IMG/VR virus record: IMGVR_UViG_3300023235_000008
Location: 62,001 to 126,000 of that record
DNA: 64,000 bases
Reading direction: 5' to 3' (one strand)
The notes under the pieces were generated by a model. The model worked only from the letters and a program-made list of their open reading frames with translations, was not told where the DNA came from and ran no database searches. The translations under genes and the position numbers were made by a program. This document shows positions 640 to 42,680 of the stretch, piece after piece. The stretch's first letter is position 1; the number at the start of each line of letters is the position of its first letter.

Positions 640-2326
640 TATATTGAATAAAATAAAACTACTTGAAAATATTCTTATTGAATACTACGACTACAATAAT
701 GAAGTATTGATGAAACGAATGAACCGAGATAACTCATTCGGTATGTATAAAGATAAGATTGGCGAAGAAGGTGAAAACTGGACCGATTGGCTTGCTGAAC
801 AAGACCCAACGCAGAATAAAAAATACGTAAACTGGATGATTACCAGATACCTTAAAGGTGGTATTCAACGCCTCGAAGATATCCCATCAAAAATCACACC
901 AGCATTAACAATCTATGCTAAACTAGCTGTAAAGAAAAAGCTAAATCCAGAACACCGTGATATCAATCGATTTAAAAACTTAGATCAATTCGTTGACGCA
1001 GTTGCTTCCTATACCGAAACAGTAGCGTCGGACGTTCTTTCCAGTAAGAAGGAAAAGAAGGTTAGTATTGAACAGGAAATGTATGCCAGCGGTGATGCTG
1101 AACTTGTATTCAACGACAAAGAATATAAGATAATTATTCCACATTCGCATAAGGCAAGTTGCTATTTCGGTAAAAATACAAAATGGTGCACGACTGCGGC
1201 TGACAATGATAGTTATCACAACCAGTATAGCGCACAGGGACCAATGTATATCATTTTACATAAACCAACGAATTCAAGATGGCAATTCCATTTTGAATCA
1301 AAGCAATATATGGATGAACAGGATCATCAAATTCAGTTGGGAACCTTCTTCGAAGAACATCCAACAATCTTTGATGTATTTCAAGAACGTGATCTATTGC
1401 CACCAAGTTTTACTATTATTCGAGATATACGTAAAGAGGGCGGTGTTACGAAAGACAACCTTAATGTTCTTTACGATGCGCTACGTGATGAAGGTGTCGC
1501 ACCGCATAATTTTCAACAGATGGATAAATCAAGCACTGATACTCGTCAAGATATTATGATTGAAGATTTCAGTGATGTTGCTGATTTTGCAAATGATAAA
1601 CTTAATAGCGATCACCCGGTTCACACATTGATCAATATTATCGAAGACCCAGATATGCTGGGTGAACTAACTGATTTTGAACCAACCGATATTCCCGATG
1701 ATTATTATGCCAAAATGATTGAATTATTGGAACCATATTATCAGGACAAAATCTTTCAGGCGGCGGGTAATACAGACGACCCACAACGTGCATTTTGGAG
1801 ACTTGAAAGAGAAGGACATCGATACTATAATCTTATGATTGATTCTTTTGAAAAAGCATTCAAAATCGGCGAGGGAAGCCAAGATGAGATTATTAAAAAT
1901 CTAAAAGAACGTGCTGTTAAATATATACAATATACTGCTTTTAATCCATCCTCACTTCAAGTGAGGATTGTTAACTATGACAGTGAAATCCAACTTATTG
2001 TATCCGTTGACACGTTATTGGATGCACTTGAAGCAAGTGGGTCTGATTACGATGATGAGTTTGAAGGAAGGATTTACGACATCATTATGTTGGGTTGGGG
2101 ATATCAAGAAGAAGGTTACGATTATAGAGAAATGTTTGGTTCATATTCCAGTGAGCAACTTATCAATGATGAAGATGGGCAGGATAAATATCTTGAAACA
2201 TTAACTAATCAAGCAAGTGTTGATATGGCAAAAGCCCTTGATTATTTTGAGCGTGAGTTTAAAATGACCGAATCCAAAAAAACGGACAAACTCCTTCAAG
2301 ACATCACACGTTTATCCAAGATTTAA
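632..2326 (+). CDS. Large acidic phage protein, paralog of 50827..52458 (putative head/ejected protein)
   Basis: ATG at 632 after GGAG. Shares DPTQNxKYVNWM...YLKGGIQRLEDIP and ASCYFGKNTxWCT blocks with 50827..52458. Confidence 0.75.
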   Translation: MRDILNKIKLLENILIEYYDYNNEVLMKRMNRDNSFGMYKDKIGEEGENWTDWLAEQDPTQNKKYVNWMITRYLKGGIQRLEDIPSKITPALTIYAKLAVKKKLNPEHRDINRFKNLDQFVDAVASYTETVASDVLSSKKEKKVSIEQEMYASGDAELVFNDKEYKIIIPHSHKASCYFGKNTKWCTTAADNDSYHNQYSAQGPMYIILHKPTNSRWQFHFESKQYMDEQDHQIQLGTFFEEHPTIFDVFQERDLLPPSFTIIRDIRKEGGVTKDNLNVLYDALRDEGVAPHNFQQMDKSSTDTRQDIMIEDFSDVADFANDKLNSDHPVHTLINIIEDPDMLGELTDFEPTDIPDDYYAKMIELLEPYYQDKIFQAAGNTDDPQRAFWRLEREGHRYYNLMIDSFEKAFKIGEGSQDEIIKNLKERAVKYIQYTAFNPSSLQVRIVNYDSEIQLIVSVDTLLDALEASGSDYDDEFEGRIYDIIMLGWGYQEEGYDYREMFGSYSSEQLINDEDGQDKYLETLTNQASVDMAKALDYFEREFKMTESKKTDKLLQDITRLSKI

Positions 2327-2327
2327 G

Positions 2328-2356
2328 TTGACTTGACTCCGCCAGTGTAGTATACT
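2328..2356 (+). promoter_or_regulatory. sigma70-like promoter
   Basis: TTGACT-N17-TATACT in an intergenic gap. Confidence 0.7.
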
Positions 2357-2388
2357 GGGTATTCAAAGCGTGGAATTTGGGAGTTAAT

Positions 2389-2598
2389 ATGGACAAACAA
2401 AAAGAACTCGACCATTATACTACCAAATTCGCAATGCATTCCGAAAGGGTGCGCCGTCTTGAAAAACTGCGTGAAACCGACCGTAGTTCATCCGCCAAGA
2501 AACGATTGGTTGATGAGAAAAAACTTAAACTTCACGCCAAAGAACGTATTGAACAACTAACGAAAGAACAAAATGGAACAAGTTATATTATACTTTGA
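2389..2598 (+). CDS. Small basic hypothetical protein
   Basis: ORF with GGAG RBS downstream of a promoter. Confidence 0.55.
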   Translation: MDKQKELDHYTTKFAMHSERVRRLEKLRETDRSSSAKKRLVDEKKLKLHAKERIEQLTKEQNGTSYIIL

Positions 2599-2878
2599 GC
2601 CAAACCCCGGCGTGTGTGTAAATCATACCCCTATGTTCAAACACTATGTTATGAACTGGCTAAGTGACCATCCCGTTGAGTTTGGCGGCTACATCGCAAT
2701 GAATGCACTTGCCAAAAAACATGACTCTAAGGAGCCTGTGTATCAGGTCATCTGTAATGACGCATATTATTTTGATGATCTATTGGAATACGTCAAGTAT
2801 GAACCACTAGAAGGCTATACTATCCACGTATATGCCAAAGAAGTAAATGAAAATCTAAGGAAAATAAATGAACATTGA
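2573..2878 (+). CDS. Hypothetical protein
   Basis: ORF overlapping neighbours in an operon. Confidence 0.55.
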   Translation: MEQVILYFEPNPGVCVNHTPMFKHYVMNWLSDHPVEFGGYIAMNALAKKHDSKEPVYQVICNDAYYFDDLLEYVKYEPLEGYTIHVYAKEVNENLRKINEH

Positions 2879-3275
2879 TTTAAACAAATACAAAGACTTC
2901 GTAGATGAAGTCACTAGCGACGAAAGCAGCGATGCTGCCAAAATGATTAACACCATTCTCCGCCTACAAGCAGAATCTGGTGTAAAAATGTCAAACCTTC
3001 TTACGGCTGGTATTGGTATGTCAAGCGAAGGAGGTGAGTTCAACGAAATCATCAAGAAATGTATCTTCCAAGGCAAACCTATGGATGAAGATACCATATA
3101 TCACATGAAGCGAGAGCTAGGTGATGTCATTTGGTATTGGATGCAAGCGTGTATCGCATTGGGCGAAGACCCTAACGACATCATTAATATGAATGTAGAA
3201 AAACTTCAAGCACGGTATCCCGGCGGCGAGTTTAACCCATATTACAGTGAAAATCGCAAAGAGGGTGATATATAG
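2868..3275 (+). CDS. MazG-like (all-alpha) nucleotide pyrophosphohydrolase
   Basis: SEGGEFNEIIKK...KRELGDVIWY...NVEKLQARYP motifs. Confidence 0.85.
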   Translation: MNIDLNKYKDFVDEVTSDESSDAAKMINTILRLQAESGVKMSNLLTAGIGMSSEGGEFNEIIKKCIFQGKPMDEDTIYHMKRELGDVIWYWMQACIALGEDPNDIINMNVEKLQARYPGGEFNPYYSENRKEGDI

Positions 3276-3288
3276 GCATAAATACAGT

Positions 3289-3531
3289 ATGTCACATCCA
3301 CTAGTAAACAAACTAACCGATTTGAGCGACGAAGAACTTACTATGAAGCTTGGTGAGTTACATAGCAAATATGCGTATGCTTCACGTGCAAATCCCTATT
3401 TAGCATCACAAATCTATGCCCTTATTGACGACTACAATGCAGAAATGTTGCAGCGTCAAGCCGAACACGATAAAGAAATCGAAGAAGCATTGGGCACTGA
3501 TTTCTTTTCGGATAATGTTAACATTAAATGA
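3289..3531 (+). CDS. Hypothetical coiled-coil protein
   Basis: ATG 4 nt after ATAAATA (3278-3284), probably leaderless. Confidence 0.55.
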   Translation: MSHPLVNKLTDLSDEELTMKLGELHSKYAYASRANPYLASQIYALIDDYNAEMLQRQAEHDKEIEEALGTDFFSDNVNIK

Positions 3532-4169
3532 CCAACATCATATGGAAGACTGATTTTCTAACAACATTGGCGTTAGAAGATGAACTCATACCTAATGGAT
3601 ACTCTTTAAAGATTGAACTTATTCCCAACACAAAACACGTTGAGGAACAGGCTATCGCATTAGAACGATTACGTGTATTTTGCGAAACTATTGTAAGCGG
3701 GAGTATTCTTAGTAGTTTTGAAAACAAAAACTTAGAAAAGCTGATGGAAACCTACGTAACAAACGTGATGTTTCTACCAGATGATCCATACGATCAGTTG
3801 TTTACGATCATACTTCATAGTAAACTATCGGCTATTCTTGAACAACGATGCTTTATTACGAATATGTCACTGTCCAGCACTATGGGAAACCTTGAATACG
3901 TATTCGATTCAGAAACATTCGAATATCCTGATATTCTTACTGAAGATATTTTACCGGGCAAGTGTGCTTGGTGGGGTAGACCCGACATATCCACGATGGA
4001 TATAATCATTGAAAAAGACGATGAACTATCAATCCATGACCAAGAGTTTAACTGGGAACATATTGGATTGACGTGGGACGGTGATAAAGAAAAAGAAGGC
4101 AAGATTATCGACGTAAAGAAGTTTAGACCAAAGATTGTAGAAGGAAAACCAAATGATACCGATGATTAA
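3528..4169 (+). CDS. Hypothetical protein
   Basis: 213-aa ORF with ATGA overlap to the upstream gene. Confidence 0.65.
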   Translation: MTNIIWKTDFLTTLALEDELIPNGYSLKIELIPNTKHVEEQAIALERLRVFCETIVSGSILSSFENKNLEKLMETYVTNVMFLPDDPYDQLFTIILHSKLSAILEQRCFITNMSLSSTMGNLEYVFDSETFEYPDILTEDILPGKCAWWGRPDISTMDIIIEKDDELSIHDQEFNWEHIGLTWDGDKEKEGKIIDVKKFRPKIVEGKPNDTDD

Positions 4170-4350
4170 AATGCATAACGGTATGGGTATTAATAGTGTT
4201 TTTTGGGTAGATGAAAAAGACTACGATAAACACGTCCGCAATAGTTGTATTAATGCTACCTTATTTTATAGACAGCAAGAAGCCAAATATGCTATACTTA
4301 GAAGAGAACTAGAAAAAGAGTTAGTAGAACATAATGTTGACAGATTGTAA
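4153..4350 (+). CDS. Hypothetical protein
   Basis: Overlapping operon ORF. Confidence 0.45.
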   Translation: MIPMIKMHNGMGINSVFWVDEKDYDKHVRNSCINATLFYRQQEAKYAILRRELEKELVEHNVDRL

Positions 4351-4843
4351 CGGTTTTGTATATTTTGACGAAGAAGATTTACTAAACGAGCTATACAAGA
4401 ATCCAGACTTAGACTTATCATTGTTTCAAACGGTTGATACGGTTATGTATCATTCATACCGTACGGCAGCAGAGGCACATTTTGAAGAGCCGTTATTGCA
4501 GCTTGGATCGTTAGAAGGCACCGAAAGTCACGATGATATAAATCGTCGTTGGCGAATGCCAGAAGAATATAAAGATATGGATATCGCCGAATGGGTATTG
4601 GGTCAATGTAAAACCGATGCCGAACTGCAACGATGTGCAGAAGAACTATTACTATTTCAAGAACGTGATATGTTTGGGTTATTACAATACCTAAAATATT
4701 TCGTAGATACGATGCGAAAAAATAAAATAGTATGGGGGGTTGGTCGTGGGTCAAGTGTAGCCAGTTACGTGTTATACTTAATCGGAACCCACAAAATCGA
4801 CAGCCTCTTTTACGAACTAGATATTAAGGAGTTTTTAAGATAA
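4334..4843 (+). CDS. Stand-alone fragment of a DNA polymerase III alpha (DnaE)-like domain
   Basis: R..EEL..F......L.YL.Y.VD....N.IVWGVGRGSSVASYVLYLIG.HKID matches the DnaE GRGS region. It ends at the FERFL-equivalent (IKEFLR). Confidence 0.75.
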   Translation: MLTDCNGFVYFDEEDLLNELYKNPDLDLSLFQTVDTVMYHSYRTAAEAHFEEPLLQLGSLEGTESHDDINRRWRMPEEYKDMDIAEWVLGQCKTDAELQRCAEELLLFQERDMFGLLQYLKYFVDTMRKNKIVWGVGRGSSVASYVLYLIGTHKIDSLFYELDIKEFLR

Positions 4844-5118
4844 TGGGAAAAGAGTATAGAACAGCACAAGGCAAGGCATTAGATATGCAAAGCTTTGTAT
4901 TAAAAAACGAGAAAGTCCGAGCAGTTGGTAATGTCAGTGTGAATGCACGGGGCGATGAAATCGATTCGTCGGGTAATATTACTCGCACTCGTGATGAGAT
5001 TATGAAACAACATTACAAGAATACCGATAAATCGCAGACACCAAATCAGTTGACACCTGATGAAGATGTTGCTGCGCCAGCAGAAGAAGTAAAGGAAACG
5101 CCAAATGCCAGTGAATAA
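4843..5118 (+). CDS. Hypothetical protein
   Basis: Translationally coupled ORF (TAATG). Confidence 0.6.
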   Translation: MGKEYRTAQGKALDMQSFVLKNEKVRAVGNVSVNARGDEIDSSGNITRTRDEIMKQHYKNTDKSQTPNQLTPDEDVAAPAEEVKETPNASE

Positions 5119-5473
5119 CACTATTGTACGTGGAACAATCACCCCGATTAAAAAGAATATCCTAATCTATGATATGAACTTTGGCGAACGCACTACTAAA
5201 GCTGGTCTTATTTTGATGGGCGATGATGGTAAGCAGCGTGGTATTCGTCCACGTTGGGGCAAGGTTTTAGCCGTTGGTCCAGAACAAGATTCTGTTGAGC
5301 CGGGACAATGGGTATTAGTAGCGCACGGGCGATGGTCACGTGGTATTCAGTATGAAGTTGATGGCAATATGCAAGAAGTTCGTATGGCAGACCCAGATGA
5401 TATTCTTGGTGTGCAAGACGATGTGCCCGATGATGCTTACGTTGCAAGCACCGATACGGCTACTGCGTATTAA
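5105..5473 (+). CDS. groES: GroES-like co-chaperonin
   Basis: GERTTKAGLIL mobile loop, GKVLAVGP, VEPGQWVL, DDILGV. Confidence 0.8.
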   Translation: MPVNNTIVRGTITPIKKNILIYDMNFGERTTKAGLILMGDDGKQRGIRPRWGKVLAVGPEQDSVEPGQWVLVAHGRWSRGIQYEVDGNMQEVRMADPDDILGVQDDVPDDAYVASTDTATAY

Positions 5474-6153
5474 AACTTAGGGCGGCGACCGTTATAGTTT
5501 TGTTGGATTTGTGCGAAGTCTTCATCGAAGTCCATAAGTTCAGTTTGGGTCCACTTTAATAGTTGTGACATATACTTTTTAAGTGTATCGGCAACACCTT
5601 CGTGAACGATACTTTCTTTCTTCATTTTGGGCTGTGTAATAGCACCGATCTTTCCCTTTTTGACTTTCTTTTCAAGCTTAGTATGTTTTTCTTTTAGTTT
5701 CAAAACTACTGGAATAAGGTCTTTGTCAAGAAGTTGAATAAGTTCACCCATAAACTTCTCGGTATCTAACACTTCTTCTTCGGTCGTCGATGCTTCTACA
5801 TCCTTGCCCATTTGAACAGTAAGGGATACTGTTTCAATAACACGGGTCAAAGCAGCATCTTCGGCGGCAAATAATAAGTCAAAGATAGGACGCATTTCTT
5901 CTTCTTTAACAAGTTCACGGCGTTTGGTGAACTCTTTGGTGGCACGATCCAGAACAAGATAACGCTTCGATAGTTTAGTTAGCTTTTCAGAAGTTGTGCC
6001 TTTTACCATTGCAGTAACTTTGGTGATATCACCAATGACTTTATCTGCTTTTGATTTACCCTCTTCTTTATAATCTATACTGGGGTCACGGGTGCCCGCT
6101 TCTTCGATATCATTGAAGCCTTCAAGCAGTGTTCTAAAGTCGTTAACTCTCAT
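5470..6153 (-). CDS. Hypothetical coiled-coil protein with an N-terminal LLE motif (putative head protein)
   Basis: The translation MRVNDFRTLLE... reads on the reverse complement (CAT at 6151-6153, stop TTA at 5470-5472). The track's + label is wrong. Preceded by AGGAG and ATAAATA on the minus strand. Confidence 0.8.
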   Translation of the reverse strand: MRVNDFRTLLEGFNDIEEAGTRDPSIDYKEEGKSKADKVIGDITKVTAMVKGTTSEKLTKLSKRYLVLDRATKEFTKRRELVKEEEMRPIFDLLFAAEDAALTRVIETVSLTVQMGKDVEASTTEEEVLDTEKFMGELIQLLDKDLIPVVLKLKEKHTKLEKKVKKGKIGAITQPKMKKESIVHEGVADTLKKYMSQLLKWTQTELMDFDEDFAQIQQNYNGRRPKF

Positions 6154-6157
6154 TTGG

Positions 6158-6221
6158 TAAATCTCCTGTTATGGTATTTATCTTATATAAGATAAATCTC
6201 CTGTTATGGTATTTATCTTAT
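6158..6221 (-). repeat. 29-bp direct repeat x2 containing a late promoter and RBS
   Basis: TAAATCTCCTGTTATGGTATTTATCTTAT at 6158-6186 and 6193-6221. On the minus strand it reads AAGATAAATACCATAACAGGAG. Confidence 0.9.
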
Positions 6222-6249
6222 TGACAATAGTTTTAATATATCGTATAAT
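6221..6249 (+). promoter_or_regulatory. sigma70 consensus promoter of the clamp loader operon
   Basis: TTGACA-N17-TATAAT. Confidence 0.85.
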
Positions 6250-6276
6250 AATGTACACACTTAATAGAGGTAATAA

Positions 6277-7191
6277 ATGCTCTGGACGGAAAAATACAGA
6301 CCGAAAACCGTAGACGACTATGTGTTTCACGGTGACGAACAAAAAGCACAAGTAAACGAATGGATTAAGAAAGGGGATATTCCACATATCCTATTCCACG
6401 GTCCACCGGGTACTGGCAAAACCACATTGGCAAAAGTTCTTATCAACGAACTAGATATTGATGAGTATGACGTAATGATGCTCAATGGTTCAAAAGAAGG
6501 TCGTAAAATCGATGAGTTCAATGCCAAACTTGATGGCTTTACACAAACGATGCCATTCGGTAACTTCAAGATTGTATTGATTGATGAGGCTGATTACCTA
6601 AACCTACATTCAGTCCAACCATCCCTACGAACCCCGATGGTTGAAAATACAAGTTGTCGTTTCATTCTGACGTGTAACTACGTGCACAAGATTATGCCAG
6701 CGATTCAAGATCGTTGTCAGGTTTTTAAGATTGAAAAACAAGATCATACCGAGTTTACCGCACGTGTTGCCGAAGTGTTAATCAATGAAGAAGTAGACTT
6801 TGACATTGACTTACTTGACAACTACGTAAAGGCAACGTATCCAAGTTTGCGTAAAGCATTGAACTTGGTCCAACAAAATACGATTGATGGCAAGTTGAAG
6901 ATTCCGACAGTTAGCGAAACAACGGTAGACATCAAGTTGGCGTTTGTTGAGTTGGTTAAGGATTCACGTTATCGTGAGGCAGTTAAGCTATTGTCGGATA
7001 ACATTCGCCAAGACGAGATTGAAGATATGTTCGTATGGTTTTATAACAACGTTAACCTGTTTGCTGAAACCGATGAACAATACTTTCGTGCAAACAAGAT
7101 TATTCGTGATGCTATCGTGGCTATTCCGAGTATCGCACACCCAGACATTCACGTTACCGCTACGGCTGGTGACTTATTAGGAATCAAATAA
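6277..7191 (+). CDS. Clamp loader AAA+ subunit (RFC small subunit / T4 gp44-like)
   Basis: LWTEKYRP, GPPGTGKTT, DEAD, SRC-like DRCQ motifs. Confidence 0.92.
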   Translation: MLWTEKYRPKTVDDYVFHGDEQKAQVNEWIKKGDIPHILFHGPPGTGKTTLAKVLINELDIDEYDVMMLNGSKEGRKIDEFNAKLDGFTQTMPFGNFKIVLIDEADYLNLHSVQPSLRTPMVENTSCRFILTCNYVHKIMPAIQDRCQVFKIEKQDHTEFTARVAEVLINEEVDFDIDLLDNYVKATYPSLRKALNLVQQNTIDGKLKIPTVSETTVDIKLAFVELVKDSRYREAVKLLSDNIRQDEIEDMFVWFYNNVNLFAETDEQYFRANKIIRDAIVAIPSIAHPDIHVTATAGDLLGIK

Positions 7192-7201
7192 AGGAAATAA
7201 A

Positions 7202-7525
7202 ATGGCTAGAGTAAAAAACAGACACATCGTTGCATATTACGCATTAAAACCACGCAAAGGCGTTCCAACCCACATCAAAGGTTGGATGAATGATGATCGT
7301 AATATTCAGTGGGACGAAACAATGAAAATGACTGACGGTTTACGTAAACGTGACGAACTGGAAGCACAGGTTATTCTCGATGTTGACGAAAAACGGATCG
7401 TTAAAAACTGGAAAGCTAATGACGGTGAAAATGATTACGACAAGTTATACGACTACTATGCTCAAAACTACGAACACTATATCAATGATTATTTGCGGTT
7501 ATCTGATAAACAACGCTTGACATAA
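7202..7525 (+). CDS. Hypothetical protein
   Basis: ORF with AAGGA RBS following the clamp loader. Confidence 0.65.
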   Translation: MARVKNRHIVAYYALKPRKGVPTHIKGWMNDDRNIQWDETMKMTDGLRKRDELEAQVILDVDEKRIVKNWKANDGENDYDKLYDYYAQNYEHYINDYLRLSDKQRLT

Positions 7526-7566
7526 CCTTGCGTTATACTACAGTTAAATCATAACGGAGCAATACA

Positions 7567-8334
7567 ATGAAAAAGCAGCCTTTACCACTTCGTGAAGTTT
7601 TAGCAGTAGCTGTCGCAGCAAGCGATGTTAACTCTTTTGAAAAGTTGGGATACGTTAAAGCAGCGTATCCAGTAAACCGCCGTATTTTTGATGGCACAGT
7701 TCAAACAGTAGCAGTGCCCGAAGGATATGACGGGGTGTATGATGGCGAACCATATGTATTCGCAAATAAAGACATCGTGAAAGAGTTTTTCGGACACAAA
7801 TCAGTTACGTACTGGAATAGCGAAAAGCATCATATTCCAAAACTTAATGTAACCGAAGAAACGTATGCCAAGGCTGACGAGATTATCAAGCACTTTCAGA
7901 AACTGATGTTCAGTGCACTCGGTGGTCAGTTAAATGATTACACGCAGTTGATTTATGATATCATTGATTCTGGCGAAGTTACGCCACGAAATATGGGTAT
8001 CGTCGCATCAATGCCTAGTTCATTTGAACGTGATGCTGTCAATAAGAAGCACCAAGAAGAAATCGACGAACTTGCACATACAAGTGAATATATCGGCGTG
8101 GTCGGTGACAAGATTGAGGTTGATATTAAAATCATCACCAGCAAGTTCATTGAGAAGTTTGGTTGCTATGTTTATAATGCTTCGACGGGCGAGAATGCTG
8201 TTACTTTCTGGTCGCAGAAGGCACCCGAAGTGTTCGGCGAAACATGTCGTATTAAGGGTAAAGTAAAGCGCACTAAGGTTAGCGATTACACCCGTGCCAA
8301 AGAAACAGAACTAAACTACGTCAAGGTGGTATAG
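7567..8334 (+). CDS. Hypothetical protein with a C-terminal OB-fold-like region
   Basis: YIGVVGDKIEVDI...IKGKVK...TELNYVK pattern; upstream promoter and GGAG. Confidence 0.55.
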   Translation: MKKQPLPLREVLAVAVAASDVNSFEKLGYVKAAYPVNRRIFDGTVQTVAVPEGYDGVYDGEPYVFANKDIVKEFFGHKSVTYWNSEKHHIPKLNVTEETYAKADEIIKHFQKLMFSALGGQLNDYTQLIYDIIDSGEVTPRNMGIVASMPSSFERDAVNKKHQEEIDELAHTSEYIGVVGDKIEVDIKIITSKFIEKFGCYVYNASTGENAVTFWSQKAPEVFGETCRIKGKVKRTKVSDYTRAKETELNYVKVV

Positions 8335-18465: not shown

Positions 18466-20766
18466 ATGTTAGAAGAAAATCCAGATATCAACAAGATCAT
18501 TGATGCATCACAAGACTATGCAGCAAAACTAAAGCATCAATATGTTACACTTGAACACCTTTTGTTCGGGTTGATCAAAGACCGAGAGTTTTCAACCATT
18601 CTTGCAGAAGTCAAGGTTGACGTTGAAGGACTTCGTGATGAGTTAGTAACTTATATGCGGGATCGTCCAGAACTTATCAGTCGGCATACAGGCACACCAA
18701 AGCGAACACATGCCCTTGAGCGTGTATTTAACCGTGCCTATACACAAGTGTTGTTCAGTGGTCGAAGCCGTATGGATAGCATTGACCTATATTTGAGCAT
18801 CCTTGCCGAAACCAACTCACACGCCGCATATTATCTTCTTAAATATCTTCCTTCTAAAGACGATATCATGGAAATGTATCAGCCCAAGGACAAAAAGGGC
18901 GCAACAAATAAATCTAAAAAAATGAACGAAACCCAAGCGCAAGAGTTGCTTGAAGAATACTGTAGCAATCTTAACGAGATGGCAGATAACGGAAAGATTG
19001 ATCCCGTTATTGGACGTGATGCCGAACTTGATGATATTGCACAAGTTCTTGCAAGACGCACAAAGTCAAACGTGCTAATGGTCGGTGATCCCGGCGTTGG
19101 TAAGACTGCGATTGCAGAAGGATTGGCATTGAAAATCAACGAAGGCAAAGTGCCTGACTATCTTGTAGGATGGGCGGTGTGGAACCTTGATGTTGGGTCA
19201 TTGCTTGCAGGTTGTAAGTTCCGTGGTGAGTTTGAAGAGAAAATCAAAGAAACCATTGAAGCACTTGAAGCACGTGGCAAGTCAATCTTGTTTATCGACG
19301 AAGCGCACACGATGCGTGGTGCTGGCAATGCTGGCACTGGCGGCGGTCCAGATTTCGCCAATATGCTGAAGCCAGCACTTGGTCGTGGCGGAATCAAGGT
19401 TATTGCATCAACAACATGGGATGAATATACCACATCATTCGAAAAAGACCGTGCTATGATGCGGCGTTTCTATCGTTTGACCGTTGATGAACCAACGCCA
19501 GAAGTTGCCAAGGATATTGTTGCGGCGATTTCGGTATATATTCGTGAACATCATGGCGCAAAGGCTATCAAAAAGGATGCCATCGAAGCGGCGGTTGATT
19601 ATTCCGTTCGTTATCAAGCCGATAAGAAACTTCCCGACAAAGCGATTGATTTGATTGATGCGGCTTGTGCAAAGCAACGGTTGCTTGGTAATAAGAACTT
19701 CGTAATCAAGAAAGTTGATGTATTGACGGAGTTAGCCCGTGCAACGGGTGTTCCAATGAATACAATGGACGATAAAGAAAAGTCCGAGAACTTGCAAAAT
19801 ATTGAAATCAATATCAAAACCAATGTGTTCGGTCAAGATGATTCAGTTGATAAAGTTCTTGATAAAATCTTCGTGGCAAAGGCTGGATTGAAATCACACG
19901 ACAAGCCGATTGGTTCCTTTATGTTTATGGGTCCAACGGGTGTGGGTAAAACCGAGTTGGCGAAACAGCTGTCACGTGAACTTGCAATGAAACTGTTGCG
20001 ATATGATATGAGTGAATATCAAGAGAAACACGCCATTGCACGTTTCGTTGGTGCCCCTGCGGGTTACGTAGGTCACGACGATACACCGGGTCTTTTGATT
20101 AAAGACATCAAAGAAAATCCTAACGCTATCATTCTTTTTGACGAAGTTGAAAAGGCGCACCCTGATGTTCTAAACATCTTGTTGCAAATGATGGACGAAG
20201 GTTATGTCACCAGTGCCAAAGGTCAACGAGCAGATGCACGTAACTGTGTTATCATTTTGACATCAAACTTGGGTGCTGCGGCAAACGAGAAAAACAACAT
20301 CGGCTTCGGATTATCCGGTGCAGCGTTGCAGAAATCAGGTGAAGAAGATAAAGAGTATGAAGCATACTTTGCACCAGAATTCCGTAACCGTGTCGATGCT
20401 GTATGTAAATTCGGCAAGTTATCTAAAATGGCGATGAAAAAGATTGTCAATAAGTTCATGAATGATGTTAATGAACTTCTTAGTGAACGTGATATGAAAA
20501 TTCGTACCACGGATGAACTTGTAGAATACCTTGTAGATAGTGGCTTTGATCCAAAGACGGGTGCACGTCCATTGGCACGTATCATCGATCAAGAAATCAA
20601 AGTCCCGCTTGCCAAGAAGATGCTGTTCGAAAAACTTGACAAAGGTAGCATTATTGTGGTAAACTATAAGGATAAAGAGGTCACATTTGACTTCACAAAT
20701 CCCCTTCCAATTGAAAATTTAGAAAAAGAGGCCATTAATGACCAAGGTATTATCGAAATCGATTAA
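18466..20766 (+). CDS. clpA: ATP-dependent Clp protease ATP-binding subunit (ClpA-like)
   Basis: Clp N domain, two AAA modules (GDPGVGKT, GPTGVGKT), LPDKAIDLID, IGF-like loop (NIGFG). Confidence 0.92.
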   Translation: MLEENPDINKIIDASQDYAAKLKHQYVTLEHLLFGLIKDREFSTILAEVKVDVEGLRDELVTYMRDRPELISRHTGTPKRTHALERVFNRAYTQVLFSGRSRMDSIDLYLSILAETNSHAAYYLLKYLPSKDDIMEMYQPKDKKGATNKSKKMNETQAQELLEEYCSNLNEMADNGKIDPVIGRDAELDDIAQVLARRTKSNVLMVGDPGVGKTAIAEGLALKINEGKVPDYLVGWAVWNLDVGSLLAGCKFRGEFEEKIKETIEALEARGKSILFIDEAHTMRGAGNAGTGGGPDFANMLKPALGRGGIKVIASTTWDEYTTSFEKDRAMMRRFYRLTVDEPTPEVAKDIVAAISVYIREHHGAKAIKKDAIEAAVDYSVRYQADKKLPDKAIDLIDAACAKQRLLGNKNFVIKKVDVLTELARATGVPMNTMDDKEKSENLQNIEINIKTNVFGQDDSVDKVLDKIFVAKAGLKSHDKPIGSFMFMGPTGVGKTELAKQLSRELAMKLLRYDMSEYQEKHAIARFVGAPAGYVGHDDTPGLLIKDIKENPNAIILFDEVEKAHPDVLNILLQMMDEGYVTSAKGQRADARNCVIILTSNLGAAANEKNNIGFGLSGAALQKSGEEDKEYEAYFAPEFRNRVDAVCKFGKLSKMAMKKIVNKFMNDVNELLSERDMKIRTTDELVEYLVDSGFDPKTGARPLARIIDQEIKVPLAKKMLFEKLDKGSIIVVNYKDKEVTFDFTNPLPIENLEKEAINDQGIIEID

Positions 20767-24204: not shown

Positions 24205-24501
24205 ATGAAAATATTACCACGCTATAGAACAGATCAATGGACAAGAGGGGAAGATTTCCCCAACGAGCCGTTTGTGTTTGATGTGCGTAATTGGGACATC
24301 GCTCATACTATGTACCGAATGTTGATGACACCTAAGTTACAACAGGATCGCAATGTAGTCGCAGTATCCTTGCGTGGTATTCCAACCGCTAACGAACTTC
24401 GCTGGTGTGAAAGAGCCGCCAGAAAAGGTAACTTCAGAATAATATGGCTTAGTACAAAAATGAAAGAAACATCAGATGCAGAACTACCTAACAACACTTA
24501 A
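24205..24501 (+). CDS. Hypothetical protein, paralog of 46087..46374
   Basis: Shared [17 protein letters not shown] and [12 protein letters not shown] blocks. Confidence 0.7.
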
Positions 24502-26128
24502 ACACATCATGGACAACGGCGTAGATCGTGGCGATAGAACGGGCACAGGCACACGCTCTGTATTCGCTCACCAGATGCGATTTGATTTGTCAGAAGGCTT
24601 TCCAGCCGTTACAACCAAGAAGCTGGCGTTCAAAGCTGTAAAGAGTGAACTGCTATGGTTCCTAGAAGGGTCTGGTGATGAAAGACGATTAGCTGAAATC
24701 AATGGCACTGAACGCACAATCTGGACTGCTAACGCTGAAGCTGACTATTGGAAACCCAAAGCAAAGTTCGAAGGCGACCTCCAAAAAGTATATGGCTACC
24801 AATGGCGAAAATGGTCAAAATATGATTCTTGGCGAGATTCTGTAACTCTAATAGAACAGGGCACTAAAATTGGTGACGATCAACCATTTTCCTTGGATTT
24901 TGATTTAGAACAAGTAGATTACACAGGTGGTGATGATTTTGTAGGAAAGATTTTTGATACAAATCAATCAGGGCAAATAAAAATTCTTAAAAAACTTGAT
25001 GTGAGAAATGGCAATTCGTATTACCGAGTTCAATTTTTAGAAGGTATCAACACCATCATAGACTGCTCTCGTCCTAACATTCGTTCAAAAACTGTAAAGA
25101 ACCCATATGCCATGACTGCGGCTGAAGGTGCTGGGTGTTATGGAGTAGTCGATAAACGATCAAAATATTTAACATCAGCATATAATATGTGGCTCAATAT
25201 GATGGAGCGGTGTCATGGTGAAAATACTGAGAAGACACTATTTTATAAACAACAAGGTATTTATGTGGATTCTAAGTGGAGATGTTTTAGTAATTTTTAC
25301 AGAGATATTCATGGTTTGGTTGGATTTGACAAATGGGTTATTAACCATTCAAAATATGAATTAGATAAAGATTATTTTGGTAATAAATTTTATGGAATAG
25401 AATCAACTATATTTCTACCTATGTGGTATAATCAATATATTTTACCTAAACATAATAATGATTTGATTATTGCGACCAATAAGAAATCTAATGAAGAATT
25501 CAAATTCACAACACCATCCTTGTTCTATAAACAAAAAGATATTAAAGATACTGATATGGTAAATAGAGCATTCCGTGAACAAAACGGCAATTCTATAAAT
25601 TGGTCATTTAGCAAAAAATCACCGCCAATCGGATATAAATGGAGACAGCAATTTTTTGTAGATCAAATCGCTGATGTCATTGAAAGCATTAAGAATGACC
25701 CTGACAGCCGTAGACATATCGTTACAGCGTATAATCCGGGAGAACTTCAAGATATGGCTCTACCACCGTGTCATATGATCTTTCAATTCTATGTGGCTAA
25801 TGGCAAACTATCATGCCATATGAACCAGCGTTCTTGTGACCTTTTTTTAGGCGTTCCATTCAATATCGCCAGTTATGCTTTACTTACACATATGATTGCT
25901 CAAGTATGCGGGCTTGATGTAGGTGAACTAATCCTGACATTAGGCGATGCTCACATTTATAGCAATCACTTCGATCAAGTCAATGAACAGCTATCACGAG
26001 AACCACAGGATTTACCAACGCTATGGTTGAACCCTGATATTAAAGATATTGATAGTTTCACAATGGATGATATCAAGCTTGAGAACTACAATCCACAGGA
26101 CACTATAAAAGCAAAGATGGCAGTGTGA
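24476..26128 (+). CDS. thyA: Thymidylate synthase ThyA with an in-frame endonuclease insertion
   Basis: DRTGTGT, TTKK, ELLWFL, YGYQWR, DSRR, LPPCH, QRSCD, GDAHIY. It is 550 aa versus ~264 for an ordinary ThyA. Confidence 0.93.
24815..25657 (+). mobile_element. In-frame HNH-like homing endonuclease domain inside thyA
   Basis: W..MMERC...Y...GIYV...W..FSNF...LDKD...NK.Y...T.FLP..YN pattern; visibly AT-richer than its flanks. Confidence 0.7.
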
Positions 26129-37070: not shown

Positions 37071-37903
37071 TTATCTAAAAAGACTAAGGATTGCTTGTTC
37101 AGATTGAACAGCAAGACTCAACGAGTTGTTAGCTAGTGCTTGGCGTGTCTGAAGAGCTAGCAAGTTAGCTGATTCTTCGTTTAGGTCTGCGTTGACCAAG
37201 TTACCAGCGCCTTCTTTGAGGCTGTTAATCATATTAGCTGTGAACTCTTCACGTGACTGAATCAACGCTGCATTTGTACCAAGCGTCTTAGCTGATGTAC
37301 GAACAGTTGACAATGCTGCATCAATCTTTGCGATATCAACATCAATGGCGGTCGTACCAGTTGCTATGGTGGCGTTTTCCCAATCACCAGCGTCGGTTAC
37401 TGCAAGACCAACTTGATCAGAAGCAATACCCGCAACCGTCAATGTTGTTGTGGTTTCGTTTAGCTTCACGGTCAAGCTATCTGGCGTAGCTTTCAGTAGT
37501 CCAACACCATTGAATGTAGCGTCTGCACTGGTGTTGTTGATCTGGTCAAGAATACCATCATATTGTGCTGAGAATGTAGTACGTTCTGCCACGCTTGAAG
37601 ATGCTTTAGCAGATTCAGCAACAGCTTTTGCTTGCTTTAGCAGACCTTCAATGGACTCTAGAGCATCAGTAGCTGTTTGTACAGTAACGATGTTGTTTGC
37701 TAGGTTTTCTTTTACCGTCAATAGATCGGATGCCGACTGCTTAAACCACGTGCAATAAAGAATGATGATGGATTATCAATAACATTGTTGACTTTCTTTC
37801 CTGACGAAAGGCGTCCTTGTGTCATTTCTAAGAGGTTAGTTGTATTTTGTAGTGAGTTTAGGTTACTGCGAATACTCGCAGATAGAGTTACTTCGTTTGA
37901 CAT
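37071..37903 (-). pseudogene. Alphaproteobacterial-type flagellin with a 1-nt deletion
   Basis: N-terminus VTLSASIRSNL..LQ.T..LL..TQ.RLSSGKKVN..DNP and C-terminus ADLNEESANLLALQTRQ.L...SLSLA.QS.Q.IL.LF. Adding one G at 37733-37734 restores SRASDLL and a 277-aa ORF. Confidence 0.88.
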
Positions 37904-38646: not shown

Positions 38647-40290
38647 TTGAGTTACGTTGACGCAATCTACGATAAACGAAATAACGTTGTTAAGGTAGTT
38701 GAAAGACTGAATGGTAAACGAATAGTAACCGAACATCCGTGTAAATGGACGTTTTATTATGACGATCCAGCTGGAAAGTATAATACTATTTTTCGTAATC
38801 CTGTTTCCAAATTCGAATCTGATAGTAAAAAGGAATTTCATCGTGAGTTGAAAAGTCGTAGTCAGACACGTGTATGGGAAAGTGATATAAATATTGTTAA
38901 TAAGACACTTGAACGTCACTATATTGGGCAGATGTCGCCCAAGCTAAACGTGTGCTTCTTCGATATTGAGGTTGACTTTTCGCCTACGCTTGGTTTTGCG
39001 CCACCCGATGACCCGTTCAATAAAGTAACGGCTATCTCATTATATTGTTCGTGGATGGATGAAATGGTTACGTTAGCTATTCCACCAAATACACTGACGC
39101 TTGAAGAAGCCGAGGCAATGATGGATTTCCCCAACACATACCTATTCAGTAACGAAGGGGATATGATTGAAACGTTCCTTGACTTAATCCAAGAAGCCGA
39201 TGTGCTTACGGGTTGGAACAGTGAAGGCTACGATATTCCGTATATGGTTAACCGAACGGCACGGGTTCTTAGTAAGAATGACACACGCCGTTTCTGTTTA
39301 CTTGACCAACTCCCAAAAGAACGTGAATACGAAAAATATGGCAAGATGCAAAAGACGTATGATTTACGTGGACGTATTCACTTGGATAGCCTATCATTGT
39401 ATCAGCAATATACCTATCACGAAATGCATTCGTATTCGTTGGATACCATTTCTGAATATGAACTAGGTGCCCGTAAAATCCAATACGCAGGATCGCTAGA
39501 TAAGTTATACAATGACGACTTTTATAAGTTCATTGAATACAACCGTCAGGATACTTTGCTATTAAAGCAACTTGATGATAAGCTACAGTTTATTGATCTA
39601 TGCAATGAAATCGCACACGATAATACAGTGCTTATTGCGGCAGCTATGGGTGCCGTTGGTGTTACTGACCAAGCCCTTATCAACTATGCGCATTCACTTG
39701 ATATGGTTGTGCCTAATAAGGTTCATTATGGCGACGACGAAGATCACCGTGCGGCTGGTGCTTATGTGGCGCATCCGAAGAAAGGCACACATAAATGGGT
39801 AGGTGCTATCGATATTAACTCACTATATCCATCGGCTATTCGTGCATTGAATATGAGTCCCGAGACATTTGTAGCACAGTTATTGCCTACACATACACGT
39901 CCGCTTATTGAAAAACGAATGGCTGAAGGCAAGTCGTTTGCAGGAGCATGGGAAGGGTTATTTGGTACACTTGAATATTCCTTTATGGATGATAAAGATG
40001 ATACCACACCACTCAAAGTACAATGGGCAGATGGCAAGCAAACCACACATACTGGCAAGGAAATTAACGATATTATTTTCCATGGTGGTGAAAAATGGGT
40101 AGTAAGCGGTAACGGCACAGTATTTGAGTATAATAAGCAAGGCATCATTCCCGGCATACTTGAAAAATGGTACGCAGAACGCCAAGAACTACAAGCCAAG
40201 AAGAAGGCAGCGGCGGTTATTGATGATTCTACCATAGAAGTACCTAATGATATTATGTCTAAACTTGGAAAGGATTTGATAGACGACTAA
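38647..40290 (+). CDS. Family B DNA polymerase, piece 1 (N-terminus, 3'-5' exonuclease, palm motif A, first finger helix)
   Basis: FFDIEV (ExoI), GWNSEGYDIPY (ExoII), YNRQD (ExoIII), AIDINSLYPS (motif A), GIIPGILEKWY.ER; then a stop. TTG start with AGGAG. Confidence 0.93.
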   Translation: MSYVDAIYDKRNNVVKVVERLNGKRIVTEHPCKWTFYYDDPAGKYNTIFRNPVSKFESDSKKEFHRELKSRSQTRVWESDINIVNKTLERHYIGQMSPKLNVCFFDIEVDFSPTLGFAPPDDPFNKVTAISLYCSWMDEMVTLAIPPNTLTLEEAEAMMDFPNTYLFSNEGDMIETFLDLIQEADVLTGWNSEGYDIPYMVNRTARVLSKNDTRRFCLLDQLPKEREYEKYGKMQKTYDLRGRIHLDSLSLYQQYTYHEMHSYSLDTISEYELGARKIQYAGSLDKLYNDDFYKFIEYNRQDTLLLKQLDDKLQFIDLCNEIAHDNTVLIAAAMGAVGVTDQALINYAHSLDMVVPNKVHYGDDEDHRAAGAYVAHPKKGTHKWVGAIDINSLYPSAIRALNMSPETFVAQLLPTHTRPLIEKRMAEGKSFAGAWEGLFGTLEYSFMDDKDDTTPLKVQWADGKQTTHTGKEINDIIFHGGEKWVVSGNGTVFEYNKQGIIPGILEKWYAERQELQAKKKAAAVIDDSTIEVPNDIMSKLGKDLIDD

Positions 40291-40312
40291 TCTCGTCTTT
40301 TGTCCTAAATAA

Positions 40313-40669
40313 ACCAAACAATATGAGTTTCTAAAAGAGAATGAAGTTGAAAGTCACCATTACCGTTATGACGGGCATTCTGTTAAAAATATAAAGTGCT
40401 ATAAGTATAAAGATTATATTGCTATTGGCGGCAAAAATATGATATCATTATTACAAGAGAATCAAATAGATATTCCAAGAAAATACGTGGATGATATAGA
40501 AATGTCTTTTCCTAAACCTCATCACAATATGCGTGAAGATAGGAAAAACTTTTTCGGTGAATATCACGGGAAATGCCTAAAAGATTTAGGTGTTGCCAAA
40601 TATAAACTCACAGAGATAGGAGAATTGAATGGATTTAGTCTCTACAATCCAAGACCTCATCAGCAATAA
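40313..40669 (+). pseudogene. Start-less degenerate ORF between PolB pieces (possible homing endonuclease remnant)
   Basis: Open frame of ~118 codons with no start near its 5' end; AT-rich; no motif firmly recognised. Confidence 0.3.
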
Positions 40670-41582
40670 CGAAACTGAAAAGTTAGAACAAGTGATGAGA
40701 GAAAACGATTTGGTTGTAAGAAACGGCAAGATTGAAAACAAAGATAGGGGTGCAGTAGCATTCCGGGATAAGCGGCAGTTGGTCAAAAAGATCAACTTGA
40801 ATTCGTAAATATTGCGACTTTATATAGTAATATATAATGAAAAACTCCTCTAACTGCGGGGAACTCTCACCGAGACAATCCGCAGCCAAGCCCGTAAGGG
40901 AAGGTTCAACGACTATGCGAAAGCAGTAGTATCAAGTGATACGAAACGGGGAGCAACCTTCAAGGTTGGTGATATAGTCTAATCTGTATGGCGACATACA
41001 GCAGTTCATGAGAGAACGCACATAAACTAACGACTTATGTGGAATATAAATGTGTATGGTGCTGTATTGAATAAGCATTGTCGTTTCTACGTCTTTGATA
41101 TCGGACAGTCAACCACACTAACTGGTCGGTGTATTGCAAAGCATATGTCAGCATACGTGAATCAATCACTGGCGGGTGAATACGATCATACTGGAAAAAG
41201 TATTGTGTATGGCGACACAGACTCAGAATTTGCCGAAACCATACACAAGACCAATTGGGGTGAGCTTACCGTAGAAGAATTGTTCAACCGAGGGCAGCGT
41301 TATTGGAATGATGCCAAGGATGATACAAAGGAATATAGTGCTAACGATGATTTGAAGGTTCTTTCGTATAACCCGGAAGAAGGCAAAGCGTATTACGGGC
41401 ACATCAATTATATCTACAGGCATAAGGTATCTAAAGAACAATGGGAAATTGAGGATCAATATGGTAATACCATTCGTGTAACTGGCGATCACTCAGTTAT
41501 GGTTGAGAGAGATGGCGTATTGATGGAAATAAAACCACGAGATATATTGAAGGATGATTTACTTATTACTACTACTGAATAA
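40629..41582 (+). CDS. Family B DNA polymerase, piece 2 (spliced 40629-40806 + 41053-41582): second finger helix, motif B, YGDTD, IntN
   Basis: ATG at 40629 after AGGAG. Splicing restores DKRQLVKKINLNSLYGAVLN. The spliced length is 708 nt, giving 235 aa. Confidence 0.85.
40807..41052 (+). mobile_element. ORF-less group I intron (246 nt) in PolB motif B
   Basis: P AACTGCGGGGAA, Q AATCCGCAGC, R GTTCAACGACTA, S GATATAGTCT. The exon ends in U pairing U.G with IGS GCGACTT, and the intron ends in G. Confidence 0.9.
41223..41579 (+). mobile_element. Split intein N-fragment (119 aa, Ser1, no Cys)
   Basis: Follows YGDTD; block B TGDHSVMV; stops at 41580-41582. Confidence 0.88.
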
Positions 41583-41701
41583 GGTCTTCATCATATGCTA
41601 CCAATAATGGATACGAGGTATTTGTTATCTGGGAAAATGATTGGTATCACGACCAATATACTATTATACAACGAGTAAAGGAATGGTGGAATGGAAGTTA
41701 A
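41583..41701 (+). pseudogene. C-terminal remnant of a Vsr-like (EDxHD-type) endonuclease between the intein halves
   Basis: Reads SYATNNGYEVFVIWENDWYHDQYTIIQRVKEWWNGS* with no start. Confidence 0.55.
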
Positions 41702-41822
41702 AAAAGCTAAAGTAAAATCTGTCAAACAGTTAGACAACTTTGATGATGAATATGTCTATGACATAGGCATGAAGAATGAAGAGCATCCATGGTTCTTCGG
41801 CAACAACATTCTCGTTCATAAC
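41691..41822 (+). mobile_element. Split intein C-fragment (44 aa, His-Asn, +1 Ser, no Cys)
   Basis: Block F YVYDIGM and block G NNILVHN/S. Confidence 0.9.
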
Positions 41823-42680
41823 AGCGTGTATTTTTCAATGTGGCCAGTTATCGAAGATGCGGTTAATAATGGTGAAATGGAATGGTCGAAAAAAATCTGC
41901 ACCGAAGTATACGATCAGGTGTCGGAAGCCGTAAATGAATCGTTTCCTCCGTTTATGAAGAAAGCATTTAACTGTCCGCAACATATGGGCGAAATCATTG
42001 AAGGTGGCCGAGAACTTATCGCAACAAAAGGATTGTTCATAAAGAAGAAGCGGTATGGTCTTATGATTTATGACGACGAAGGAACACGCCGTGATGTTGA
42101 TGGCAAAGAGGGCAAAGTCAAAGCTATGGGCTTGGACTTGAAGCGTTCGGATACGCCGGGGTATATGCAAGAATTTCTTATGGAAATCCTTATCGATGTG
42201 TTAACAGACAAAGAAGAAGATGAAATCATTGGTAAGATTTTTGACTTCAAAAAAGAGTTTGTAGAACGTCCGCCTTGGGAAAAAGGTACGCCAAAACGTG
42301 TGAACAACCTTACCAAGTACACCAAGATGTATGAAAATAAGGGCATGAAAGGCGTAATGATTCCCGGTCACGTATCGGCAGCTATTCATTGGAATAAGTT
42401 AAAAAAGTTCTATTCTGATAACTATTCAATGGATATTCAAGACGGTCAAAAGACTATTGTGTGTAAGTTAAAGAATAATCCGCTTGGATATACGAGCATC
42501 GGGTATCCGATTGATGAACCACATATTCCAGACTGGTTTAAGGATTTGCCGTTTGATAACGAGTTAATGCTTGCAACTATTGTGGATCAAAAAATTAAAA
42601 ACTTGCTTGGTGTTATGAAGTGGGATTTGGATACTAAAACAGACGTTACTTCGACTTTTAATACACTATTTGATGTATAG
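41691..42680 (+). CDS. Family B DNA polymerase, piece 3: IntC (44 aa) plus remaining palm and thumb
   Basis: VYDIGM..HPWFFGNNILVHN|SVYF; KKKRYG, KAMGLDLKRSDTP, KGTPKRVN. Confidence 0.92.
   Translation: MEVKKAKVKSVKQLDNFDDEYVYDIGMKNEEHPWFFGNNILVHNSVYFSMWPVIEDAVNNGEMEWSKKICTEVYDQVSEAVNESFPPFMKKAFNCPQHMGEIIEGGRELIATKGLFIKKKRYGLMIYDDEGTRRDVDGKEGKVKAMGLDLKRSDTPGYMQEFLMEILIDVLTDKEEDEIIGKIFDFKKEFVERPPWEKGTPKRVNNLTKYTKMYENKGMKGVMIPGHVSAAIHWNKLKKFYSDNYSMDIQDGQKTIVCKLKNNPLGYTSIGYPIDEPHIPDWFKDLPFDNELMLATIVDQKIKNLLGVMKWDLDTKTDVTSTFNTLFDV

Follow-up and report, generated by a model that had tools for sequence, protein, structure and literature searches.

Within a stretch of 64,000 nucleotides (nt) of the IMG/VR virus record IMGVR_UViG_3300023235_000008 (positions 62,001 to 126,000 of the record; hereafter the window), we find a family B DNA polymerase (PolB) gene that is present as three cistrons on the same strand, each with a Shine-Dalgarno-like sequence and a start codon (Table 1). 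A sequence-only reading made earlier of this DNA had proposed that the polymerase is encoded in three pieces and rebuilt by three different mechanisms. At the level of the sequence our analysis agrees, and it adds what that reading had overlooked: remnants of homing endonuclease genes in both of the gaps that separate the pieces (gap A, between pieces 1 and 2, and gap B, between pieces 2 and 3).

Table 1. Features of the split polymerase locus in the window and arrangement of the related metagenomic loci. IntN and IntC, N- and C-terminal halves of the intein; aa, amino acids; ORF, open reading frame.
Sequence	Feature	Position	Strand	Description
Window	Piece 1	38647-40290	+	547 aa, gp43A-like; N-terminal domain, 3'-5' exonuclease, palm motif A (DINSLYPS), first finger helix, tail
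Window	First finger helix of piece 1	within 38647-40290	+	WYAERQELQAKKK
Window	Hairpin spanning the stop codon of piece 1	40281-40298	+	6 bp, weak T run after it; kept in L046; consensus match only
Window	GIY-YIG/NUMOD3 (Seg-like) free-standing homing endonuclease, 3' remnant	40313-40669	+	118 open codons, then stop
Window	Piece 2, exon 1	40629-40806	+	finger-tip head, second finger helix, motif B to ...KKINLNS and base 1 of the Leu codon
Window	Group I intron, ORF-less	40807-41052	+	246 nt, RF00028
Window	Piece 2, exon 2, extein part	41053-41222	+	(L)YGAVLNK... to ...YGDTD, motif C without its Ser
Window	IntN	41223-41582	+	119 aa and stop
Window	Vsr-like/PD-(D/E)xK homing endonuclease, 3' remnant	41594-41677	+	~28 codons in the 108-nt spacer 41583-41690
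Window	IntC	41691-41822	+	44 aa, opens piece 3
Window	Piece 3, extein	41823-42680	+	285 aa and stop; +1 Ser completing YGDTDS, remaining palm (KKKRY), thumb
L046	Piece-1 homologue	4478-6055		
L046	Intact endonuclease (P0001)	6309-7256		
L046	Exon 1	7219-7398		59 aa
L046	Group I intron			92 bits
L050	Locus			piece 1, opposite-strand ORF, piece 2, Vsr-like endonuclease, piece 3
L048, L049	Locus	1755-7865		as L050, with PolB in four pieces; piece 1 itself broken again, after residue ~113
L054	Locus			GIY-YIG endonuclease, exon 1, group I intron (75.5 bits), exon 2-IntN, 67 nt, IntC-piece 3
L055	Locus			piece 1, opposite-strand Vsr-like endonuclease, exon 1, truncated intron (20 bits), exon 2-IntN, IntC

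Piece 1 starts with TTG, with AGGAG 7 nt upstream. It matches PF03104 and the first 138 of the 453 positions of PF00136, and it aligns with residues 190-432 and 444-489 of RB69 gp43, the latter being the first finger helix. Its C-terminus reads ...ERQELQAKKK, followed by about 25 further residues and by the stop at 40290 that the sequence-only reading had placed just after this helix. Because piece 1 reaches residues 444-489 of RB69 gp43, we locate the break between pieces 1 and 2 at the finger tip. Motif B lies in piece 2, which has a start codon of its own, an ATG at 40629 preceded by AGGAG. The break thus falls between the two finger helices, as in the gp43A/gp43B type of split polymerase. 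Three ORFs follow piece 1: one of 59 aa (40629-40808), which ends in ...DKRQLVKKINLNS and whose TAA is cut by the splice site described below; one of 181 aa (41037-41582), which matches PF00136 and then PF14890; and one of 329 aa (41691-42680), which matches the end of PF14890 and then PF00136.

The pieces follow one another along the uninterrupted 1012-aa PolB of the Sinorhizobium phage Phosso: piece 1 aligns with residues 1-579, exon 1 with 596-656, exon 2 (from the Tyr of LYG) with 658-716, and the extein of piece 3 with 713-1010. Relative to uninterrupted relatives, the exon-2 extein is 61-70% identical and the piece-3 extein 52-59%. Motifs Exo I-III, A, B, C, and KKRY are all intact across the pieces. 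Piece 3 was rightly described as starting with IntC and supplying palm and thumb, but what it contributes to motif C is its Ser only, and not a larger remainder of the motif.

The interruption of piece 2 is a group I intron. The Rfam model RF00028 matches positions 40789-41001 with 105.8 bits (E-value 1.9e-26, gathering score 50) over model positions 1-253 of 253, and the core of the intron is complete. Splicing after T40806 and after G41052 would give AAT TCG T|TG TAT GGT, i.e., N S L Y G. A single codon (Leu) likewise separates the residues of exon 1 from those of exon 2 in about 35 uninterrupted IMG/VR relatives, where the two matches lie in one frame, three bases apart. The introns of Bacillus phage 11143, of the crAss-like cr116, and of Twort orf142 align with that of the window up to G41052 and no further. 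Read by hand, the P1 helix has 7 of 8 pairs, including U40806-G40814, and the intron ends in G (41052). The splice sites thus show the U-G pair in P1, the terminal G, and the in-frame exon ligation of group I introns. In the hairpin taken as P2, the window and the related contig L046 differ by one compensatory change, U-A to C-G. These features suggest that the intron self-splices and gives a piece-2 mRNA of 235 codons. The AGGAG and ATG of piece 2, the LYG that is joined only by removal of the intron, and the end of the piece in IntN were all found as the sequence-only reading had described them.

A further interruption of the gene is a split intein at motif C. Block A of IntN starts at Ser1 (SEFAETIH...), N2 is TVEELFNR, B is NTIRVTGDHSVMV, and N4 is LMEIKPRDILKDDLLI. 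In IntC, block F is VYDIGMKNEEHPWFF and block G is GNNILVHN, after which the extein resumes with SVYF. The halves are separated by a stop codon (41580-41582) and a new ATG (41691), and the junction, YGDTD|SVYF, is motif C itself. Ser1, TGDH in block B, the terminal His-Asn, and Ser+1, as expected of a class 1 split intein, are all present, and the blocks agree with the published ones of the split PolB intein in phage MIJ3 (PMC6892783). The two halves match PF14890 with E-values of 4e-8 and 7.7e-3. They are 49-60% identical to a contiguous mini-intein at the same site in the Salicola phage SCTP-2: IntN is 49% identical to that mini-intein and 43% to the IntN of phage PA5oct, and IntC is 57-70% identical to the IntC of SCTP-2, of PA5oct, and of the metagenomic contigs L048, L050, and L054. 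IntN and IntC are thus predicted to trans-splice into a piece 2+3 of 401 aa (116 + 285 aa). In a further contig, L053 (1504-3021), we observed a piece 3 led by IntC in which, about six codons on, there is a second, contiguous mini-intein of the same family, almost in tandem.

Gap A holds the 3' end of a gene for a free-standing endonuclease. An exhaustive HMMER search showed its frame to be 88% identical to residues 199-315 of P0001, an intact endonuclease of 315 aa encoded by L046; a word-indexed homologue search of the same frame returned no matches, and the comparison with Pfam and PHROGs was uninformative. The GIY-YIG (residues 4-91) and NUMOD3 (98-117) domains of P0001 are both deleted in the window, which therefore lacks the catalytic domain, and the remnant has no start codon before 40439. 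Compared with L046, the window has lost about 835 bp, comprising the region upstream of the endonuclease and its first ~198 codons. L056, a mosaic strain variant, keeps 79 nt more of the gene and has a 16-nt internal deletion, so that L046, L056, and the window look like a series of decay of one GIY-YIG endonuclease gene. A 6-bp hairpin lies on the stop codon of piece 1 (Table 1). It could be a terminator or act in translational control, like the hairpins found upstream of free-standing endonuclease genes. In a promoter scan, matches were no more frequent than in shuffled sequence.

Gap B retains even less. Over 28 aa, its remnant shares 46% identity with residues 290-317 of a 325-aa endonuclease of the Klebsiella phage KP13-7, whose ORF lies between IntN and IntC and matches PF18741 and homing-endonuclease PHROGs; the remnant itself has weak matches to PF18741 (E-value 0.014) and to phrog_22677. 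In a fractured gene, an endonuclease gene stands between the intein halves. Here there is only the tail of one, and the locus is a former fractured gene whose Vsr-like endonuclease has been almost completely lost. Weak blastx matches had suggested that gaps A and B hold the two halves of a single Vsr-like endonuclease, an option ruled out by the 88% identity of gap A to the GIY-YIG/NUMOD3 tail. The gap-A remnant overlaps the ribosome-binding site and start codon of piece 2, and the gap-B frame continues across those of piece 3; the retained 3' ends may persist owing to this overlap.

We searched for relatives with the same lesions. There is no near-identical DNA among GenBank phages, and the cultured relatives are distant (38-45% protein identity). 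The PolB gene of Phosso is uninterrupted, and those of PA5oct and KP13-7 have the split intein and its endonuclease gene without the finger-tip break and without the intron. The contig L046 shows the complementary arrangement: piece 1, intact endonuclease, exon 1, and intron, with the remaining polymerase after the intron free of an intein. A search with the ORF of exon 2 and IntN yielded about 19 metagenomic proteins of 235-252 aa, 42-61% identical, which start at the aligned Met of piece 2 in the finger tip and end in IntN. They look like whole piece-2 genes without the intron. We read the genomic context of three of them (L050, L048, L049). L048 and L049 have the finger-tip split and a split intein with an intact Vsr-like endonuclease. 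In L048, L050, and L052, exon 1 runs straight on into exon 2 in the same frame and multi-locus Rfam scans found no intron, a result that is slightly less secure because such scans missed the intron of L054, recovered only by a targeted Rfam scan. The finger-tip split and the split intein thus appear to be widespread together in metagenomes.

All three lesions occur in at least two further lineages, L054 and L055, which are 39-64% identical to the window. In both, as in the window, an ORF starts at the YG of motif B. The L054 contig starts inside the endonuclease gene, and piece 1 would lie beyond its edge. The start position of piece 2 is kept in L046, L050, L054, and L055.

A comparison with related sequences shows that parts of the locus are mobile. 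DNA identity between the window and L046 is 78-98% over approximately 40190-41060. This tract runs from the tail of piece 1 through the endonuclease remnant and exon 1 and includes the intron, which by itself is 94-98% identical. Identity falls to 55-75% in the body of piece 1 and to 48-74% beyond 41060. Positions 1-1887 of L056 are equivalent to 40152-41987 of the window. There, divergence from the window is 0-1% in the endonuclease remnant, exon 1, and the intron, 2% in IntN, and 4% in the gap-B spacer, but 27% in the 170-nt exon-2 extein and 22% in the piece-3 extein. In P0059, piece 1 is 70% identical and its tail differs in one residue only. These tracts of identity in L046, L056, and P0059 therefore indicate a recent transfer of both the endonuclease-intron cassette and the intein among polymerase genes that are themselves diverged. 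In the window as in L046, L054, and L056, the intron adjoins the GIY-YIG gene or what remains of it, and the pair was transferred together. By analogy with Aeromonas phage 25, the neighbouring GIY-YIG endonuclease probably mobilised the ORF-less intron, i.e., by collaborative homing.

The tails at the finger tip deserve a separate treatment. In the closest uninterrupted relatives (P0063, P0064, and L008-L040), the finger tip reads ...QAKKKAA, seven residues, and FWDKRQLVKK.... In the window, the ~25-aa tail of piece 1, the endonuclease remnant, and the ~42-aa head of piece 2 exactly replace these seven residues. The head of piece 2 resembles the long contiguous finger-tip inserts of Phosso (z-score 6.1, 0 of 500 shuffles) and KP13-7 (z-score 7.4), and the tail of piece 1 resembles the Phosso insert only (z-score 4.5). 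The tails thus seem to be the two halves of a module of the finger tip that occurs elsewhere in one piece. The sequence-only reading had noted extra tails on both pieces at the split; they are indeed present, but they are extra only with respect to relatives with a short finger tip and are not novel add-ons. They might form a docking interface, as it had suggested.

A bolder possibility, which we hold tentatively and think doubtful, is that the tail of piece 1, the GIY-YIG endonuclease, the head of piece 2, exon 1, and the intron form one composite mobile cassette that brings both halves of the finger tip with it. Such a cassette could break any short-finger-tip PolB between ...KKKAA and FWDKRQ... 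and leave an enzyme that can still be assembled, and the long contiguous tips of Phosso and of the Rak2-like PolBs would then be scars of healed cassettes. We raise it because the tails lie inside the tract of high identity, the nearest short-tip relatives have no tails, and the head resembles contiguous long tips. A simpler alternative is that donor exon sequence beside the endonuclease was co-converted. If the composite cassette were real, a mobile element would supply its own assembly parts to the polymerase it breaks; a comparable case is that of Aeh1 NrdA, where interaction domains were donated by the mobile element.

Taken as a whole, we are fairly confident that an uncultured large phage, distantly related to PA5oct, Phosso, and the Rak2-like phages, has its replicative PolB gene here, that selfish elements have colonised this gene at three sites, and that the enzyme is most likely still made. 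A cassette with a free-standing GIY-YIG endonuclease would have inserted at the finger tip and separated piece 1 from piece 2, and the 3' third of its gene survives. The ORF-less group I intron interrupts the Leu codon of motif B, 178 nt from the start of piece 2, and would have to self-splice. The mini-intein at YGDTD|S would itself have been broken by a Vsr-like endonuclease gene, of which about 28 codons are left. The three cistrons would be translated separately, IntN and IntC would associate and trans-splice into the 401-aa piece 2+3, and this product would bind piece 1 (547 aa) non-covalently, with contacts along the two antiparallel finger helices and at their tip, as in gp43A/gp43B. 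An active enzyme would thus depend on RNA cis-splicing, protein trans-splicing, and non-covalent assembly, as the sequence-only reading had claimed; the intact intron, intein blocks, and junction residues and the conserved start of piece 2 support this claim.

Several observations weigh against this explanation, and some of them would favour instead a decaying pseudogene, whose pieces no longer form an active enzyme in a phage replicated by another polymerase, its own or the host's. Both homing endonuclease genes are truncated, and the locus is clearly eroding. The IntN of L056 has an in-frame stop codon. The intron of L055 (3226-3374, ~150 nt, 20 bits), at the same site, lacks the segment taken as P7/P3'/P8; either it is dead or there is a gap in the assembly. 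Some copies of the three-lesion architecture may therefore be dead, or their contigs may contain errors. The genome measures at least 230 kb, of which our analysis covered 64 kb, and a second polymerase could be encoded elsewhere. Neither PF14890 match reaches the gathering score, as one expects of half an intein, and the splicing and complex formation, like the collaborative homing, are what we infer from the DNA.

We nevertheless regard a pseudogene as unlikely. The catalytic and splicing residues are all intact, and the same piece boundaries recur in the relatives that are 39-64% identical. The ratios of nonsynonymous to synonymous substitution rates (dN/dS) relative to L046, 0.085 for piece 1 (with dS saturated) and 0.08 for exon 1, point to strong purifying selection. 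Further, the pieces are identical or nearly so in three metagenomes, and the loss of selfish endonuclease genes is their expected fate and uninformative on the host gene. We conclude that the arrangement is real and probably functional.

Two further options retain very little credit, and about equally so. In the first, pieces 1 and 2 are joined covalently across 40291-40628 by a second intron, RNA trans-splicing, ribosomal bypass, or frameshifting. The insertion of an endonuclease gene can come with translational bypass, as in T4 gene 60, and the hairpin on the stop codon of piece 1 would be compatible with it. Yet a permissive Rfam scan of 40100-41800 gave only chance-level hits in gap A, so that we discarded a second intron or other RNA there; all three frames of the gap have stops, the sole long open frame being the endonuclease remnant. 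The gap holds a complete 315-aa gene in L046 and an opposite-strand gene in L050 and L055, and piece 2 has its own AGGAG and ATG at a conserved position. In the second option, the intron is retained and the enzyme is made of four pieces, with exon 1 (59 aa) separate from the exon-2 ORF. The in-frame ATG at 41037, which opens the 181-aa ORF, would allow it, and gene callers report such ORFs in relatives. However, motif B would then be cut between NS and LYG, there is no evidence of a ribosome-binding site at 41037, which lies inside the conserved 3' segment of the intron, and the intron has a complete core, 94-98% identical to that of L046, with one compensatory change.

An artefact or chimera of assembly, including in the interval 40290-40629 that the sequence-only reading had flagged, is effectively refuted even if these are metagenomic assemblies from three source samples that are possibly not independent: one IMG/VR contig is identical over 13.6 kb (probably the window's own source), a second differs by 1 base, a third encodes the polymerase pieces identically, their recurrence in three separate metagenomes makes such an error very unlikely, and the same junctions are found in diverged contigs from other projects (L046, L054, L056, and L057).

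The closest published precedent is gene 43 of Aeromonas phage 25, which, according to two accounts (PMC2988022, PMC2993671), combines a finger-tip split, a free-standing GIY-YIG endonuclease, and an ORF-less group I intron near motif B. As they relay from Petrov, Ratnayaka & Karam 2010, the arrangement is 43A / seg43(25) / 43B with a group IA2 intron. In these accounts, gp43A and gp43B are reported to co-purify and to be active (PMC2988022), and the mobility of the intron is attributed to the neighbouring GIY-YIG enzyme (PMC2993671). We confirmed the layout in NC_008208: 43A, the endonuclease, and 43B with an exon 1 of 66 aa that ends in ...NSLYGALN. As in the window, the finger tip is split, the GIY-YIG gene lies between the pieces, and the intron is about 60 codons into the second cistron (66 aa there, 59 aa in the window). 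In contrast, phage 25 is of the T4-like lineage and the window of a PA5oct/Phosso-like clade; the endonuclease is intact in the former, truncated in the latter, and only ~26% identical in the GIY-YIG domain, a domain that the window itself lacks; the phage 25 intron lies ~5 codons further downstream (after ...NSLYGALN), and phage 25 has no intein.

The third lesion also has precedents. The Pseudomonas phages MIJ3 and PA5oct have a split PolB intein with an endonuclease gene between its halves, and SCTP-2 has a mini-intein (PMC6892783). These are inserted at the same site, YGDTD|S, and belong to the same family, with an identical block G (GNNILVHNS) and an IntC that is 60% identical. In contrast to the window, their finger tip is uninterrupted and they have no intron; PA5oct has an intact endonuclease gene and SCTP-2 a contiguous intein where the window has a 108-nt spacer with an endonuclease tail. 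More generally, Dassa et al. 2009 (PMC2677866) described 'fractured genes', in which the halves of a split intein flank a free-standing endonuclease, often Vsr-like, and their model includes later loss of the endonuclease. The window would correspond to a late stage, with the endonuclease almost gone, plus an intein-less fracture and an intron in the same gene. The same work mentions an intein-less fractured SbcD gene with extra residues at the fracture point (PMC2677866). As cited there, the PolB of Nanoarchaeum equitans is likewise a B-family polymerase made from two genes by trans-splicing of a split intein (Choi et al. 2006), but it is archaeal, its genes are far apart, and it has neither the intron nor the non-covalent split. 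Aeh1 NrdA, an essential enzyme cut by the mobile endonuclease gene mobE, reassembles non-covalently (PMC3045599), and a PolB tolerates a break at the finger tip, as Pfu polymerase retains full activity when split there (PMC3061061). The former is another enzyme, the latter was engineered, and neither combines RNA and protein splicing.

These precedents bear out the view that each lesion alone had been seen before. Among phage polymerase genes they cover pairs only, in phage 25 gene 43 and in the split PolB intein of MIJ3/PA5oct. In the literature outside subscription journals we found no description of all three lesions in one gene, in agreement with the sequence-only reading, nor of a finger-tip split together with a split intein. 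The combination of these known kinds of elements thus seems new, yet it is not unique in nature.

Other genes of the window also caught our attention. The thymidylate synthase ORF (24476-26128, + strand, 550 aa) has its ThyA halves parted by an insert of ~290 aa with similarity to HNH endonucleases (residues 157-382). The insert is probably either an intein or an endonuclease gene inserted in frame, so that a second core gene of the phage appears to be colonised. Just upstream of the polymerase there is a flagellin-like gene (37071-37903, - strand), unusual in a phage, made of a 61-aa ORF (Flagellin_N) and a 216-aa ORF (Flagellin_C) that overlap by 4 nt; a frameshift within one gene could account for this, as could two separate cistrons. 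The window also encodes a large Lon-like ATP-dependent protease (18466-20766, + strand; phrog_4871, 783 bits).

These results have practical consequences. Polymerases of this kind show up as several short 'hypothetical' ORFs, which is a warning for annotation. The loci provide new naturally split Ser1/Ser+1 inteins and natural PolB split points for protein engineering. From the evolutionary point of view, the locus and its relatives represent successive stages of selfish elements, from the intact endonuclease (L046 and L050), through its partial deletion (L056, then the window), to a split intein free of its endonuclease. The recombination boundaries are clear and reveal an exchange of element-sized modules among polymerase genes 25-30% diverged from one another. 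Should the enzyme be active, an essential replication protein would need ribozyme splicing, protein trans-splicing, and subunit docking all at once, and the locus would be a compact natural case of a core gene fragmented by selfish elements with its function kept.

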